NCBI GenBank assembly: GCA_021613535.1
Contig: CP075492.1
Span: forward strand, 10,602,001 to 10,666,000
Direction: 5' to 3'
Source: Adineta vaga
Taxonomy: Eukaryota; Animalia; Rotifera
Length of the DNA stretch: 64,000 bases
The stretch's first letter is position 1, and every line of letters starts with the position of its first letter. The translations under genes were made by a program, and so were the position numbers. Positions 416 through 8,284 of this stretch are shown here, in pieces. The notes under the pieces were generated by a model. That model did no database searches and had not been told where the DNA came from. It worked only from the letters and a program-made list of their open reading frames with translations.

Positions 416-1644
416 ATGATATTGTTGATTTTTCTCATATTTCCTGCTGTACAATCATATTTATTTGGATGTTATTATGATTATAATCAACCATTAATCT
501 TACCCGAACAGTTGCCCACCAGTATTTGCACACATGTATTATTGATTGGAGCAGTTCTTGTTAAAGATCGAGGGCTTAGTTTTGTTCAACGTCCATACAA
601 TGGTTCTGAGGCATTACAAAGTATGAGAGAGTATCGTACACGCGATTCCAATAGACTGAAACTAGTTCCATCCATAGTTGGTGATGATGTAGAATGGAAA
701 ACAGCATTGAAGGATTCAGAATCTCGAACAATATTCATCGCAAATCTCGTCGATTTTGCATCATCTCAAGTAAAGAATGACGAAAATTTTCTTTGACTTT
801 TTATATGAATGAATAGGAAGTCGATGGTTTTGATTTTGATTGGGAATATCCATGTGGAGATTTCAAATCGATCTATACCGAATTTATTCAAGAACTACGT
901 CTAGCTGTAGATCGAATGTTCAACACTAAGTTTCTGATTGGTACTGCCGTGGGTGCAGGTAAATATACAATTGATAATTGCTATGAAATTGGTAAATTAG
1001 GTTTAATACTTGATCTAATTCATCTAATGACGTATGATTATCATAGTAAGTACTATTATTTTAAGAAAATCAATCAATTTATAGTTATCTATTCAGCTAT
1101 TTATGATAAACAAACAGGATATAGTTCGCCTATTTATCCAAAAAGTGTTGAAACAGGTGATGCTCGATATTACAATACCGAGTGGAGTGCAATGTATCTT
1201 GTTGAACAGGGTGTACCACGAAATAAAATTCTCATTGGATTCGAAGGACTTGGTCATACATTCCAATTGAATAACAGTGATAATCATGATTTTGCAGCAC
1301 CTGTTGTTGGTCCTGGTTATGGTAGTGGATGGATGACATTTATTGAATTTTGTTTAATTGTAAAAACTGCTGGATCACATTGGGACGATGAAGCAAAAGT
1401 TAATTATACATATTATAAAGATCAATGGACAAATGTAGGAGATGTAAGAGCAGCAGTGGAGAAAGTGCTCTTTACTAAAGCACATGATTACGGTGGTGTA
1501 TTTAGTTTTGTGAGTTTATAAATGAATAGAACTGTTTGAATCTATTGGTATATTTAGGGTCTTCATCTCGATGATCCAACAGATATTTGTCAACACGGTG
1601 AAACTTTTCCGATTCATCGTACAGTCGCTCGACATTTACAATAA
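416..1644 (+). CDS. Secreted GH18 chitinase/chitinase-like protein, 4 exons, no chitin-binding module
   Basis: Signal peptide and CTH motif in exon 1. After intron 770-816 the frame reads EVDGFDFDWEYP (GH18 DxxDxDxE). It continues with MTYDYH and GVPRNKILIG, and the last exon reads GLHLDD...TAA at 1642-1644. Confidence 0.9.
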
Positions 1645-1769: not shown

Positions 1770-4700
1770 ATGTCGTCGATATTTGGTTATACTTGTATAC
1801 TAATCTATTTTCTATTTCTTTCCATAATGACGTGTGAAACACGATTCATCAATGAAGAAGAGACAATTGATAATTCACAACTTGCAATTATACTCTCAAA
1901 TTATCGACATCGATTTGAACATTCAACAAATTTAAAGAAACTTCGATGGACTTTAGACAATCGATATAATAAAGCTTATTGTCAATTTTGTGATTTAGTT
2001 GTACCTGTGGTATGCTAGGGATTCACATAATTTGAATATAGATTTTCTCATTCTCTCATTTCGTTTAGGTTCGGTTACTTATCGAAGCAAATCAAACTAC
2101 TCATATTGAAAATATTGTTATGGGATTTTGTAAAGAATTTAAATTAATCGATATTGATGTTTGTATCGGTGCAGTTCATGAATATCGAGTAAAGCAATTT
2201 TTCAAAAGAGTAATCAATAGTTTTATTTTTCAAATAGGATGCAGTTATTGCCGTGATATCTCAATCGAGTTATAGTAATAAACAATTATGTGCATTAGCA
2301 TTAAATTGTCGTAAACAATTTGATTATCCAATATTAACATGGAATGTAACATTTCCATCTGATAAACCAAAACCATTACCAAAACCTCCTCAACCTCCAA
2401 AAGTAAATGTTACCAATAAGCATTATAACGTTTAGAAATTATTTTGATAACATCATGTTCACTATCGAGTAATTTACTTGTACGAGTTATTTGTTGCCAT
2501 GTATAAGTTGTTTTGTTATCTAATGAAGCATCAGGAAAGAATTTATTTAGATCAATTGAGAGATTTGATGACATAGTTCTGTTGAGATTTGTTTGAATAT
2601 AACAACAAACAGATGTTTCTAGCCAAGCATTATCCGTATTCTTCGAATCATCTGTAGAGAAAAAGAGCAAATAAATCTCGTAATGAAAGTAAATTTCTCT
2701 TTACCAATATAAGCAGTACTAACAAATGTTAAATGTTCGATAATTCGATTGATTTTGTTATCATTTGTATCAGAATTTAGATTATTCCATTTTTGATAGA
2801 TATCACAAAGAAATACTTTCAATGTTTTCTTAACTGCATTCATATTAGTTCCAGTAGTCCATGTTGATGGTAAATGAAAGTATGAATCATCTTGTGTTGA
2901 ATGCATAAGATATTTGAATATTTCTTTTCCAGATTTCATTTCATTAGTACCATACATAATAACGAGATGAGTTTGATAATTAACTCCCCATCGTTTTAGA
3001 ATACCTCGTCCACATAAACCAGTTCGACCAAGAGGATTTAAGGGATAACCTTTTTGATCAATTGAATAATGACCAAATGGATTAGCAGTACGTCGATCGA
3101 CATTATAGTTTGTATCGAATGTATTCCACATGAAATTCGAAGTGATTTCTTCAGGATCGGCATTACTCGTACGAATGAGAAGCGAAGAATGCGTGTAATA
3201 CGATGGATTGTACCTATGTATAAGAGAGATGATCTTTCATTCATTTCTCTAACAACTACTACTTTGGTAGATCAACACTCCATGGTACTTGATCATCATT
3301 CATCTGTTGTCGTAATATAGATGTATTTGGATAGACACCTTTCCGACAAAATCGATGGATAGGTAAATGATTTTGCAATAATTTATCCTGTTAAAATTCA
3401 ATAACAGAACTTTCGAATGTGAATTTATTTCTGAGTACTTGCTGTTGATGCCGATGTCGTCCACATGTATTAGCAATTATATTTTGATGGGGAGATAGTA
3501 GTTCTTCTTCATCAAAAAGACGTTTTTCTTCAGATGTTAACTTTGATCGGTAGGATTTAATAGTTTTCTTTTGAGATTTCAATCGTAATAATTGATGACA
3601 GTATAGTAATTGTTCGCACATATCAATGGTAGATTTATTAGAATGATTAATCTTTTCTGATTTCTTCGTACCAGATGGTAATAATGCATTGGCTATTGAT
3701 AATTTCTATACAAATATTTATTGTAGAATATAATAAAATACAACAAACTCGAGCGATTAATTTCAGATCAGGACGTTGATTGATGAATTTTGATTGACGC
3801 TTTGTTTTTAGAAAATCTAATAATAATTGATCTTTCATGAGATTTACATTTGTTAGAAAGAATGAAATAGAAAAAAAAGGAACATTTATATCACTAAGCG
3901 CTTTATATATATATATATATATATTATTTTAGCCCGGTTCATCTATTTTTACTGTCTTACATTTATCTGATATTCATGTTGATTTTTCTTATAAACCTGG
4001 ATCACAAGCTGATTGTTCTCAACCATTGTGCTGTCGAGATGGCCAGCCAGGTTTGCAAATTTAATAAAGATCTGAATATCTCTCAGATTGATGTGCTTTT
4101 TCGTTTAGCTCCAGGTCATGTTGGTGCTGGATTTTGGTAAGAACTTACTTTCTCTATTCATCGTAGAGAAAATCTTATTTGATCTAGGGGTGATTTACGT
4201 AGTTGTGATATTCCATATTGGACAGCAGAAGTTATTCTTCAATACGCTTCTGAATTAGAAAAGGTTTCATTTTCTATTAGTAAGTAAATGTATACATGAT
4301 TGTTCTGTGTTTAGGTAGATTTTGTTTATTATACCGGTGATCTTCCACCTCATAATGTTTGGAATCAGTCTCAAGAGCAACAACTCTATTCACTTAAAAC
4401 AATCAATCAATTATTAGCAAAAACTTTTCCGAATATAACATTCTATTCAGCAGTTGGTAATCATGAATCAGGTAAATGATATTCTCTTGAGTTTTTCCAT
4501 GCAATCCTTTTACTCTTTTAGCACCATGCAATCTCTTTCCTACACCGAGTATTCGTTCAGATAATATTTCATGGTTGTATGAAGCATTAGCTGATAGTTG
4601 GATTAATCTTGGATTACCTGAACATACACGTGAAACGATCGAACGTGGAGGTTTTTATACAACAATAGTACGACCTGGTTTTCGAGTCATATCTTTGAAT

Positions 4701-5561
4701 ATGAATTATTGTTCAGCAGATAATTTTTGGTTATTTATCAATTCCACTGATCCATTAAATCAACTTCAATGGGTAAGATGTTCCATGTTGAAGAGATATT
4801 TAAATGTTTGGTATCATTTTTCTTATTAGATGATTGAATGGTTACAATATGCAGAAGATCACGGAGAAAAAGTTCATATTATTGGACATATTCCACCGAA
4901 ACAATGTTTAGCATCATTTAGTTGGAATTTTGATAAGATTATTAATCGGTAAGCAATCTGTTGTCTTTCGTTGTCGACTGTTATTGTATTGAAATTGTAT
5001 TAGATATGAAAATACGATTACTGGTCAATTTTATGGACATACACATAATGATGAAATTGTTATCAATTATGATGAAATCGATCAAAAACGTCCTATTTCA
5101 ATGGTTCGATGTCGTTATTTGTGTCAATTGATAGTGACTTTTTATACTTTTAGGGATATATAACACCGTCATTAACAACTTTTTCCAATCTCAATCCTGG
5201 TTATCGTGTATATAAGATTGATGGTCATTATCCTGATAGTTCCTATTGGGTACTTGATCATCGTACAGTAATTATGAATTTAACAGCAACAAATCTCTAC
5301 AATCGAACTATTTTCGTTGATGAATATGATGCTCGTTATGCCTATCAAATGGAAAATTTATTTCCAAATGATTGGCATAATTTAATTCAACGATTGCAAA
5401 ATGATATGGATGGTTCATTAATGGATTTAGTTTATCAATATTATACAAAATCATATGCAAATGGAACTCAATGTGATCATAACTGTCGTCGAGGACTTCT
5501 TTGTGATTTCATAACAGCCCGTGCTGAAGATCCTCATTCATGTGATTCAATCCCTAATTAA
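1770..5561 (+). CDS. SMPD1: Acid sphingomyelinase (SMPD1-like), copy 1, multi-exon
   Basis: Signal peptide, saposin-B domain (CQFCDLVV...FC...VC...LC) and Pro-rich linker. Metallophosphoesterase motifs [35 protein letters not shown]. The intron 2403-3932 is unusually long. Confidence 0.93.
2410..3838 (-). CDS. NUDT9-homology (ADP-ribose pyrophosphatase-like) protein with degenerate Nudix box, nested antisense in an ASM1 intron; ~410 aa
   Basis: Exons 3838-3749, 3705-3439, 3387-3263, 3213-2705 and 2651-2410 splice in frame through GT-AG introns (1233 nt). NUDT9-type motifs: [69 protein letters not shown]. Confidence 0.88.
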
Positions 5562-5936: not shown

Positions 5937-8284
5937 ATGGAGGTAATAAGATGCCTAGTTGTTGTACTAGTTCTTGTAGTCTTTTCTATAACACGAATTT
6001 CTACACGTTCAATTCTACAAGATTCAGTGGATCTTTTGATAAATGATCCATCACAAAATGAGGAATTAAGTTCAATATCGAACAGTGTTAGTAGTTATCG
6101 TCATCGTTTGGAACACTCGACTAATATTCAAGCCGTTCGTTGGGCTCTTAGAAAATTAAATGCAGATGAACTCTGTGAATTTTGTGATTTGATGGTTCCA
6201 GTAGTAAGACGATTTGTTTTTTATCTCTTTCTATTCTATTGATATATAATTGAACGAGTGTAGATTCGAATTCTTATTGAAACAAATCAAACATCACATT
6301 TTGAATCAACACTCTTGTTCGTATGCAGAGAATATAAAAAAATTGCTTTTGATGTCTGTATTGGAGCAGTTGATGAATATAAAGTAATTGATCAGATAAA
6401 AATTCTCTATTAAAAAATAACATATCGAATAGGATGCCGTCCTTGAAATAATTACAAATTCACCTCTGAATAATAAAGGTTTATGTGCGTTAGCATTCAA
6501 ATGTGAACCACAATTTGATTTTCCACTATTAAAATGGAATGTTACAATACCAAATAAACCAAAACCAACACCACGACCACCTCAACCACCATCAGTAAGA
6601 ACACCGAGAGAATTGAAATACAATGAAAGATTTTTTTTCTAGCCAGAATCACCAAAATTAACTATTCTTCATCTATCTGATATTCATGTTGATTTTGCTT
6701 ATAAACCAGGATCATTGGGCGACTGTGGTGAACCTTTGTGTTGTCGTGCAGGTCAACCAGGTAGGTTTTTTTCATTCTCATAGGTGATGAATACAATTTT
6801 TCTGAAATTTATATATATATATATTATAGGTGTTAATCAAACAGGTGCTGGTTTTTGGTACGATCGTTTGATATTGTTCATAATAGAAATATTCTATTTT
6901 TATTATTGAAGGGGTGATTATAGAGGTTGTGATTTACCATATTGGACAGCCGAAGCTTTATTGAAACGTATTATTGAAGTTGAAAAAGTAAATCTTCGGG
7001 AAACATCTAAGAAATTAATTGAAATTTTGCTTCATTAATAGAATATTGATTTTATCTATTATACTGGTGATTTACCACCGCATAATGTTTGGAATCAATC
7101 TCGTAGTGATCAATTGTATTCGATCAATACTATCAATCAATTATTAGTAACACTTTTCTCAAATAAAACATTCTATTCAGCAGTTGGTAATCATGAAGCT
7201 GGTAAATGATATTTTCTTGAGTTTTCTAATCAATTCTTTTATCATTTTTAGCACCATGCAATATGTTTCCAACGCCAAGTGTTCGATCAGATAATATCTC
7301 ATGGTTGTATGAAGCATTAGCTGATAATTGGATCAAACTTGGTTTACCACTTAATACTCGAGAGAGCATTTTACGTGGTGCTTTCTATACAGCAATAGTA
7401 CGACCAGGTTTACGATTGATTTCTATGAATATGAATTATTGTGCCGAAGATAATTTTTGGTTATTCATCAATTCTACTGATCCATTAAATCAACTTCAAT
7501 GGGTAAGATTTCTTTTCATAGTAAAAAAAAGTTCATTAGATCGATTGTGATTCTTAGATGGTCGATTGGTTACAATATGCAGAAGATCATGGAGAAAAAG
7601 TTCATATTATTGGACATCATCCACCAAGTTCATGTTTAGCAGCATTTAGTTGGAACTATTATAAAGCTGTAAATCGGTCAGTAAAGTCATTGCATTGAAA
7701 TAAATGTCTATTAGTCGAAGTGTATTAGATATGAAAATACTATTGCTGGTCAGTTTTTTGGACATGTACATTCAGATGAGTTTACTGTATTTTATGATGA
7801 AATCGATCAAAAACGTCCTGTCTCAGTCGTAAGTAAATAATATCTTAATAAGAAATTCGAAAATTTACTTTTATACAAGGCTTATATTGGTCCTTCGGTA
7901 ACAACGTATTCAAGTTTAAATCCTGGTTATCGTGTTTTTACTATCGATGGTAATTATTCAGGTAGTTCCTATTGGCCACTTAATCATCGAACAGTTATTA
8001 TGAACTTAACTGAATCTAATGTTCAAAATAAAACAATCTTTCTTGATGAATACAATGCTCGAGATGCTTATGAATTGAAGAATTTATATCCAAATGATTG
8101 GAGTGAATTTCTCGATAGATTGCAACAAGATATTGATGGTCCATTGATGAAATTAGTGGCGAAATATCATAGAAAAAGTCATCCAAGTGATTGTAATCAT
8201 AACTGTCGTCGTGCACTTCTATGTCGATTGAAATCAGCTCGATCTGAAGATCCTCATGCATGTGATTCAATTCCATCTTTTTAA
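5937..8284 (+). CDS. SMPD1: Acid sphingomyelinase (SMPD1-like), copy 2, multi-exon tandem paralog
   Basis: Same domain order and intron positions as copy 1. Motifs [35 protein letters not shown]. All introns are short. Confidence 0.93.

Follow-up and report, generated by a model that had tools for sequence, protein, structure and literature searches.

In the bdelloid rotifer Adineta vaga, one intron of an acid sphingomyelinase (ASM) gene encloses a complete five-exon gene with NUDT9 homology, encoded on the opposite strand. The stretch analysed here (the window, 64 kb long) corresponds to positions 10602001-10666000 of contig C3 of the A. vaga assembly, and all coordinates given without a contig name are those of the window; genome searches covered the 100.8 Mb of the assembly's six contigs. 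The host gene, which we call ASM1, is an SMPD1 homolog whose third intron contains the guest, and its tandem paralog ASM2 has no nested gene. We consider it highly probable that the two genes form an evolutionarily old and otherwise ordinary nested pair, made up of a spliced ASM1 host and an independent antisense guest with a NUDT9 fold. A first-pass annotation of the window had claimed that the intron measures 1530 nt in ASM1 (2403-3932) and 48 nt in the tandem copy (6595-6642), that an intact, multi-intron NUDT9-like gene of about 410 amino acids occupies it in ASM1 only, that the gene's own introns argue against a recent retrocopy, and, by implication, that ASM1 is a spliced host and not a disrupted gene. 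The coordinates proved exact on reading of the sequence, and the other three claims are borne out by the structure, homology, selection and RNA data described here.

The minus strand of ASM1 intron 3 carries an open gene of 410 codons plus a TAA stop, with a coding span of 3838-2410. Its five exons sum to 1233 nt (Table 1); each is open in frame, the four introns (43, 51, 49 and 53 nt) all run GT..AG, and the split codons read AAG and GAT. The coding span takes up 1429 of the 1530 intron bases (93%), leaving 7 nt on the host donor side, beyond the stop codon, and 94 nt on the host acceptor side, before the ATG. Comparison with other bdelloids supports this structure along its length: exon 1 is 64% identical to sequence at the same relative place in contig L017, a conserved stretch in exon 2 is kept in L017, L018, Rotaria, Didymodactylos carnosus and L019, the join of exons 3 and 4 is borne out by L018 and D. 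carnosus, where both exons are contiguous, and the join of exons 4 and 5 agrees with the GenBank model P0001 and with D. carnosus P0006. P0001 is the A. vaga GenBank protein UJR09912.1 (I4U23_014134), which is 100% identical to part of the nested gene. The annotation of Rotaria sp. Silwood2 splits the guest into pieces of 69 and 99 amino acids and calls only the 3′ part of ASM1 (263-277 amino acids). Throughout, the nested gene was searched exon by exon, and counts for the ratio of nonsynonymous to synonymous divergence (dN/dS) were summed per exon.

To the PDB, exon 4 gave matches (phmmer) with NUDT9 (1q33, residues 36-123, E 2.8e-11) and a TRPM2 chanzyme (2.1e-11), and exon 5 with the TRPM2 C-terminus (E 0.004) and residues 213-281 of NUDT9 (E 0.05). 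Exon 3 aligns with canonical NUDT9 N-termini. Pfam searches with single exons of the nested gene and with its orthologs returned no NUDIX or NUDT9_N match; precomputed Pfam NUDT9_N matches are listed on orthologs in the assembly collection. The orthologs share 45-75% identity with the nested gene. Evidence on the fold comes from a model of the D. carnosus ortholog (P0154:196-504), standing in for the A. vaga protein and predicted with the family alignment, which reached a predicted local distance difference test (pLDDT) of 83.5 and a predicted template modelling score (pTM) of 0.81. Its best PDB match was NUDT9 1qvj (E 1.2e-19, template modelling scores 0.69/0.73), followed by the NUDT9-H domains of TRPM2. 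Exons 1 and 2 encode an N-terminal extension of about 120 amino acids that includes the conserved stretch (...IIAN..G.H.H) and matches no Pfam family.

The nested protein departs from the catalytic Nudix box GX5EX7REUXEEXGU. In our alignment of the family (A1), the canonical LPGGM...E...REFxEE is replaced by LPSTW...KVFLCD, so that GG becomes ST; both box glycines and both glutamates are absent in every bdelloid member, and D. carnosus has REF, not EE. The motifs GRTGxxGRG and NTDNAWLET are retained in the bdelloid members. Among 1.84 billion library proteins, 465 relatives of exon 4 were found, of which the seven below 1e-30 span the region of the degenerate box. Because the Nudix-box glycines and glutamates are lost, the nested protein is predicted to be non-catalytic, and we infer from its sequence that it would act as a binder or sensor of ADP-ribose or a related nucleotide and not as a pyrophosphatase. 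NUDT9 is a mitochondrial ADP-ribose pyrophosphatase, and the NUDT9-H domain of vertebrate TRPM2 has a degenerate Nudix box, like that of the nested protein. With both, the nested protein has in common a two-part architecture (N-terminal domain plus Nudix core) and the motifs GRTGxxGRG and NTDNAWxET. Unlike TRPM2 NUDT9-H, it stands alone and is not fused to a channel; unlike NUDT9, it carries the conserved N-terminal extension and the altered box. A literature search found no paper pairing NUDT9 with rotifers.

We found no second copy of the nested gene across the A. vaga genome, the other matches being distant NUDT9-like paralogs on contigs 2 and 6 (L015, C2:10285260-10286100; L016, C6:2084270-2084960). 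In both of these the Nudix-box region likewise fails to align with canonical NUDT9 proteins, and degenerate NUDT9-like genes may form a small family in A. vaga.

The host is, by its ASMase_C domain and metallophosphatase core, an SMPD1-type acid sphingomyelinase homolog, closer to SMPD1 than to SMPDL3. Its last exon matches Pfam ASMase_C (1.1e-09) and the PDB sphingomyelin phosphodiesterases 5hqn, 5fi9 and 5i81 (E 4e-28 to 3.5e-26), with a far weaker match to SMPDL3A (5.8e-08 versus 4e-28 for sphingomyelin phosphodiesterase). Exon 4 begins with ...LHLSDIHVD, and the motifs LSDIHVD and GNHE are both readable in the sequence. SMPD1-type enzymes have a saposin-like domain at the N-terminus and then a proline-rich linker; in ASM1 such a Pro-rich linker closes exon 3, and exons 1-3, searched singly, had no Pfam match. 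Intron 3 is in phase 0 at both flanks, and all other introns of ASM1 and ASM2 measure 48-60 nt.

ASM1 is transcribed and its third intron is spliced out, as shown by the arithmetic of one RNA contig. The RNA data consisted of four RNA-like runs, available as spliced contig sets, in which GT..AG joints were found at every tested small intron of ASM1 and ASM2; the ASM2 junction 6594^6643, across the homologous intron, is present in the X2 contigs. X2 contig 4 (887 nt, depth 7.99) covers 1782-2008, 2068-2188 and 2238-2402 with 513 of its letters. The joints 4048^4107, 4135^4187 and 4261^4313 and a variant at 4409, 58 letters from a contig end, also have a depth of 7.99, and the remaining 374 letters of contig 4 equal exactly 3933-4048 + 4107-4135 + 4187-4261 + 4313-4466. 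This sum fits only if 2402 is joined to 3933; the contig therefore runs from exon 1 to exon 7 with the 1530-nt intron removed.

Both genes carry the mark of selection. For the nested gene, dN/dS is 0.27 against L017, 0.28 against Rotaria and 0.19 against L018, and for ASM1 the corresponding values are 0.16, 0.29 and 0.13. The proportion of nonsynonymous differences (pN) is well below that of synonymous differences (pS) in every exon of the nested gene (about 1000 sites, three species compared), and both halves of ASM1, on either side of the intron, are under purifying selection. These comparisons suggest that purifying selection maintains both genes; nothing shows that they need each other.

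The same nesting recurs outside A. vaga, in Rotaria sp. Silwood2 and in three or four further bdelloid contigs. With all loci oriented so that the guest is on the + strand, A. vaga C3, L017, L018 and L027 have a common order: ASM1 exon 4 to last exon (-), guest (+), ASM1 exons 3-1 (-), and a GH18 chitinase-like gene (-). ASM2 (-) additionally lies on the left in A. vaga, L017 and L018, and FEZ (+) on the right in A. vaga, L018 and L027; past FEZ, TMEM70 (+) is seen in A. vaga, where the two genes are located 2.6-6 kb from the nested gene (FEZ at 2.6 kb). Rotaria sp. Silwood2 (L021-L023) shows the same order without ASM2, and L030 has the right half of the nested arrangement. The GH18 gene belongs to this conserved block, being syntenic in L017, L018, Rotaria and L027. 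Close relatives of the guest were found only in bdelloid genomes and in contigs with the same gene order, apart from two short contigs (L019 and the carrier of P0005) that cannot be placed; in L019 (45% identity), no ASM1 exons were found in the flanks (E<0.01-0.05).

By contrast with ASM1, its paralogs are empty: in ASM2, in both ohnologs on contig C6 and in the C1 paralog, the homologous intron is short and contains no nested gene. On C6, the ohnologous block (C6:5267700-5275100; L013, L025) has a tandem ASM pair beside FEZ and neither a NUDT9-like gene nor GH18; some 1.4 kb between ASM exon 1 and FEZ is unassigned. Judged by gene content, this block has lost, or never had, the NUDT9-like and GH18 genes. 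In a tree of ASM last exons, the four ASM1 orthologs stand apart from the ASM2 clade (100/99) plus the C6 and C1 copies (support for the split 89/90).

In D. carnosus, the ortholog is free-standing and is followed by FEZ and TMEM70. Sequence identity of 46-51%, together with a shared degenerate box and N-terminal motif, marks it as the ortholog, and the gene's surroundings contain no ASM1 exons and no GH18 (E<0.01-0.05). It is without A. vaga introns 3 and 4 and has a 57-nt intron of its own within the NTDNAWLET region; at this locus (L020, CAJNOQ010000164.1, 6001-17667), the NCBI model CAF0766383.1 (1058 amino acids) fuses the NUDT9-like gene, FEZ and TMEM70, which are unrelated, into a single product.

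These comparisons bear on the origin of the nesting, which is common to Adineta, Rotaria and other bdelloid contigs at a synonymous divergence of 0.6-1.7 and is, by gene order and divergence, ancient and specific to the ASM1 lineage. It probably arose once, before the split of Adineta and Rotaria and after ASM1 parted from the other ASM copies. Because the guest is still beside FEZ and TMEM70, as in D. carnosus, its gene order points to a local rearrangement and not to insertion from elsewhere, and the most likely origin is an old rearrangement spanning a few kb. One possible route would be a tandem duplication of a segment comprising ASM1 exons 1-3 and the NUDT9-like gene, after which the inner copy of the exons and the outer copy of the guest were lost; the persistence of the NUDT9-like gene in its ancestral neighbourhood would then be accounted for. 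The first-pass annotation had proposed that the guest was either gained by insertion at the DNA level in one paralog or lost precisely from the other. Gain in ASM1 and loss from the other copies do remain formally equal, at one step each on the unrooted ASM tree; of the ways in which a gain could have come about, insertion from elsewhere is the less likely. Its contrast between one intron and its tandem counterpart was likewise extended and refined, with the guest absent from ASM2 and from the C6 and C1 copies, and the event old and shared with Rotaria.

Two other origins were considered and rejected. A mobile-element insertion would be expected to leave its trace at the intron ends, where a repeat search gave only short matches at chance level and where we found no poly(A) tract, target-site duplication or terminal repeats. 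A retrocopy is excluded by the four GT..AG introns of the gene itself, some of them at conserved positions, and by the lack of flanking direct repeats. The guest resembles retrocopies and transposon-borne intronic genes in being an extra gene in an intron of one paralog only; it differs from them in its introns, its clean flanks and its own flanking synteny with FEZ and TMEM70.

Several points weigh against parts of this account. The assembly's annotation differs from our 410-residue model: UJR09912.1 is a 166-residue hypothetical protein (2410-3131) that begins within exon 4 and, by placing an additional intron in exon 5, shifts the frame. We argue that this model is wrong because all of exon 5 is conserved as coding sequence, and by that comparison it is truncated. 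The 2402^3933 joint was deduced from contig arithmetic and was not itself displayed, the TA repeat at 3895-3933 being skipped. None of the four RNA-like runs yielded an RNA contig over 2410-3838, in data where contigs drop rare transcripts and the depth of the host is only 5-9. The ligand binding that we ascribe to the nested protein is drawn from homology. In D. carnosus, a highly diverged ASM-like relic is present 5.8 kb from the NUDT9-like gene, and this species may once have had the host gene and lost it, instead of having always been without it. Finally, the ASM tree, on which the direction of the event depends, is unrooted and poorly resolved outside its two clades; rooting it with the D. 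carnosus relic was tried and rejected, as that branch is far too long to inform.

The two genes are packed very tightly. The guest stop lies 5-7 nt from the host 5′ splice site in A. vaga, L017, Rotaria and L027, and 21 nt from it in L018, so that the host donor GTAAAT, read antisense, forms the first bases of the guest 3′ untranslated region (UTR). At the loci with the 5-7 nt spacing, the guest ATG is 54-94 nt from host exon 4. Since only the coding part of the guest fits the intron, its 3′ UTR, and possibly its promoter too, must overlap host exons. With 93% of the intron coding, the 3′ UTR must run antisense over host exon 3, and it is predicted to be antisense to all of that exon: the first AATAAA past the nested stop, at +183 nt, is inside host intron 2. 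Similar poly(A) signals occur at +210 in L017 and at +112 and +178 in Rotaria. The guest promoter would lie in or beside the 94 nt that separate its ATG from the host acceptor, a spacer that contains the GC-rich palindrome AAGCGCTT and, directly after it, a (TA)n run. The spacers of L017 (about 5017-5026) and Rotaria L023 (about 6726-6735) have AAAGCGCTTA in the corresponding position, and the palindrome is absent from the L018 spacer. AAGCGCTT may serve the nested gene as a promoter element or belong to the host branch-site region; as a general promoter motif it was rejected, since it occurs once in the 64-kb window. Given the predicted antisense 3′ UTR and these spacer features (TA run, conserved palindrome), some antisense interplay is possible, if unproven.

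We wondered whether the pair might constitute a regulatory unit, in which antisense transcription of the guest across exon 3 and next to exon 4 silences ASM1 or alters its splicing, or the reverse, giving ASM1 alone a condition-specific control, for instance under desiccation or DNA damage. The conserved spacing of stop to donor (5-7 nt) and of ATG to exon 4 (54-94 nt), and the palindrome conserved in the spacer, would agree with such control, as would the four RNA-like runs, in which the host but not the guest was seen, a pattern that mutually exclusive expression could produce; nested genes do cause transcriptional interference in other animals (PMC3192792). We nevertheless regard it as unlikely. 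In a compact genome whose introns measure about 50 nt, deletion bias may by itself explain the tight packing, and L018 has a wider gap (21 nt) and no palindrome. The NUDT9-like gene works without the host in D. carnosus, and ASM copies work without the guest. With the guest found apart from ASM1 in D. carnosus, an ASM pair on C6 that has no guest, and no guest transcript in the RNA-like runs, the regulation by transcriptional interference that had been suggested at first reading is unsupported. From gene content, there is no sign that the two genes work together, as each exists alone (the guest in D. carnosus, the host family in the C6 ohnologs), and the proposal that the pairing couples ADP-ribose sensing to ceramide and membrane repair is unsupported by any data. 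A more specific form of the idea holds that the nesting persists for its function as a switch. The guest would encode a non-catalytic, stand-alone sensor of ADP-ribose, and desiccation or irradiation, by way of PARP activity and the ADP-ribose it releases, would induce transcription of the guest; passing antisense through ASM1 exon 3, this transcription would shut down or re-route this one paralog, with the 5-7 nt abutment and AAGCGCTT as parts of the switch. We think this very doubtful.

It is also conceivable that the nested frame in A. vaga is a silent or decaying copy, with the long intron only its remnant. The missing RNA contig over the gene and the truncated 166-residue hypothetical protein of the annotation would be expected in that case. 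A decaying copy would hardly show 410 codons without a stop and four canonical introns, or dN/dS of 0.19-0.28 with pN so far below pS exon by exon; the sequence of the degenerate box is itself conserved, and five or more other bdelloid genomes or contigs have the gene intact. We therefore hold this explanation to be highly improbable, and favour an intact guest gene. That the insertion split ASM1 into two genes or made it a pseudogene, or that the arrangement is an assembly error, is contradicted and scarcely credible: the Rotaria sp. Silwood2 annotation does call only a 3′ part (263-277 amino acids) as an ASM gene, but one RNA contig connects exons 1-3 with exons 4-7, both halves are in phase and under purifying selection, the same order appears in independent assemblies of several species, and DNA-like runs contain up to 82% of the stretch's words.

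The arrangement of a spliced host with an independent antisense guest has well-described counterparts. In Drosophila, about 6% of genes are intronic (PMC3786989), and the LRRTM genes within alpha-catenin introns are conserved nested pairs in vertebrates (PMC3933685). Like these LRRTM genes and Drosophila 2mit in intron 11 of timeless2, the A. vaga guest is a whole coding gene on the opposite strand, contained in one intron of an unrelated host that splices over it; as with LRRTM and alpha-catenin (PMC3933685), the ASM1/NUDT9-like pair has long been conserved. It differs in three respects. Typical nested genes sit deep in large introns, whereas this guest fills 93% of its intron in a genome where introns are normally about 50 nt; its untranslated ends must overlap host coding exons; and it has stayed in its ancestral neighbourhood, suggesting that the host rearranged around the guest.

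Animals have many nested antisense genes, and little is to be learned from the arrangement as such. What the locus offers is, first, a pair of corrected gene models, a 410-residue NUDT9-like protein and a full-length ASM1, to replace the split or truncated annotation of A. vaga and Rotaria. It is also a dated example of nesting in a very compact genome, with the guest beside its old neighbours and the 5′ part of the host moved to its other side, and as such a case for how nesting arises. The guest product is a candidate ligand-binding pseudoenzyme, a conserved NUDT9-like protein without catalytic residues found so far only in bdelloids, in which ADP-ribose metabolism is of interest because of their tolerance of DNA damage. 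Should the conserved antisense overlap turn out to be regulatory, the locus would offer a neat switch specific to one paralog, though nothing so far points that way.

Table 1. Coordinates of the nested gene, its host and neighbouring features (window positions unless a contig is named).
Feature	Position	Strand	Remarks
Nested gene, exon 1	3749-3838	-	90 nt, 30 codons; ATG at 3838; open frame
Nested gene, exon 2	3439-3705	-	267 nt, 89 codons; N-terminal extension with conserved stretch
Nested gene, exon 3	3263-3387	-	125 nt, 41 codons + 2 nt; start of NUDT9 N-terminal domain
Nested gene, exon 4	2705-3213	-	509 nt; rest of NUDT9 N-domain and Nudix core with degenerate box
Nested gene, exon 5	2410-2651	-	242 nt; retained motif; stop TAA at 2412-2410
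ASM1, acid sphingomyelinase (SMPD1) homolog, host	1770-5561	+	Pfam and PDB matches, spliced RNA contigs
ASM1 exons (among others)	1770-2009, 2069-2188, 2238-2402, 3933-4050, last exon 5154-5561	+	from sequence reading
ASM1 intron 3	2403-3932	+	1530 nt, GTAAAT...TTTTAG; exon 3 ends at 2402, donor GTAAAT at 2403; acceptor TTTTAG ends at 3932, exon 4 from 3933
ASM2, tandem paralog of ASM1	5937-8284	+	homologous intron 6595-6642 (48 nt), no nested gene
GH18 chitinase-like gene upstream of ASM1	416-1643	+	Pfam Glyco_hydro_18, 6.6e-23
Stop-to-donor abutment	2403-2412; L017 6736-6745; L023 8122-8130; L027 about 3362-3370
First AATAAA past nested stop	2222-2227	-	+183 nt, inside host intron 2
Palindrome AAGCGCTT	3896-3903		in 94-nt spacer between nested ATG and host acceptor; then (TA)n at 3904-3924

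Some RNA contigs of X2 and X6 match ASM1 only over a short, mismatched piece at 5003-5055, or the window at 7597-7626, and are then unlike the window, with 255-letter loose ends at 5055. These contigs probably come from another ASM paralog, on C6 or C1, and would show that those copies are expressed.

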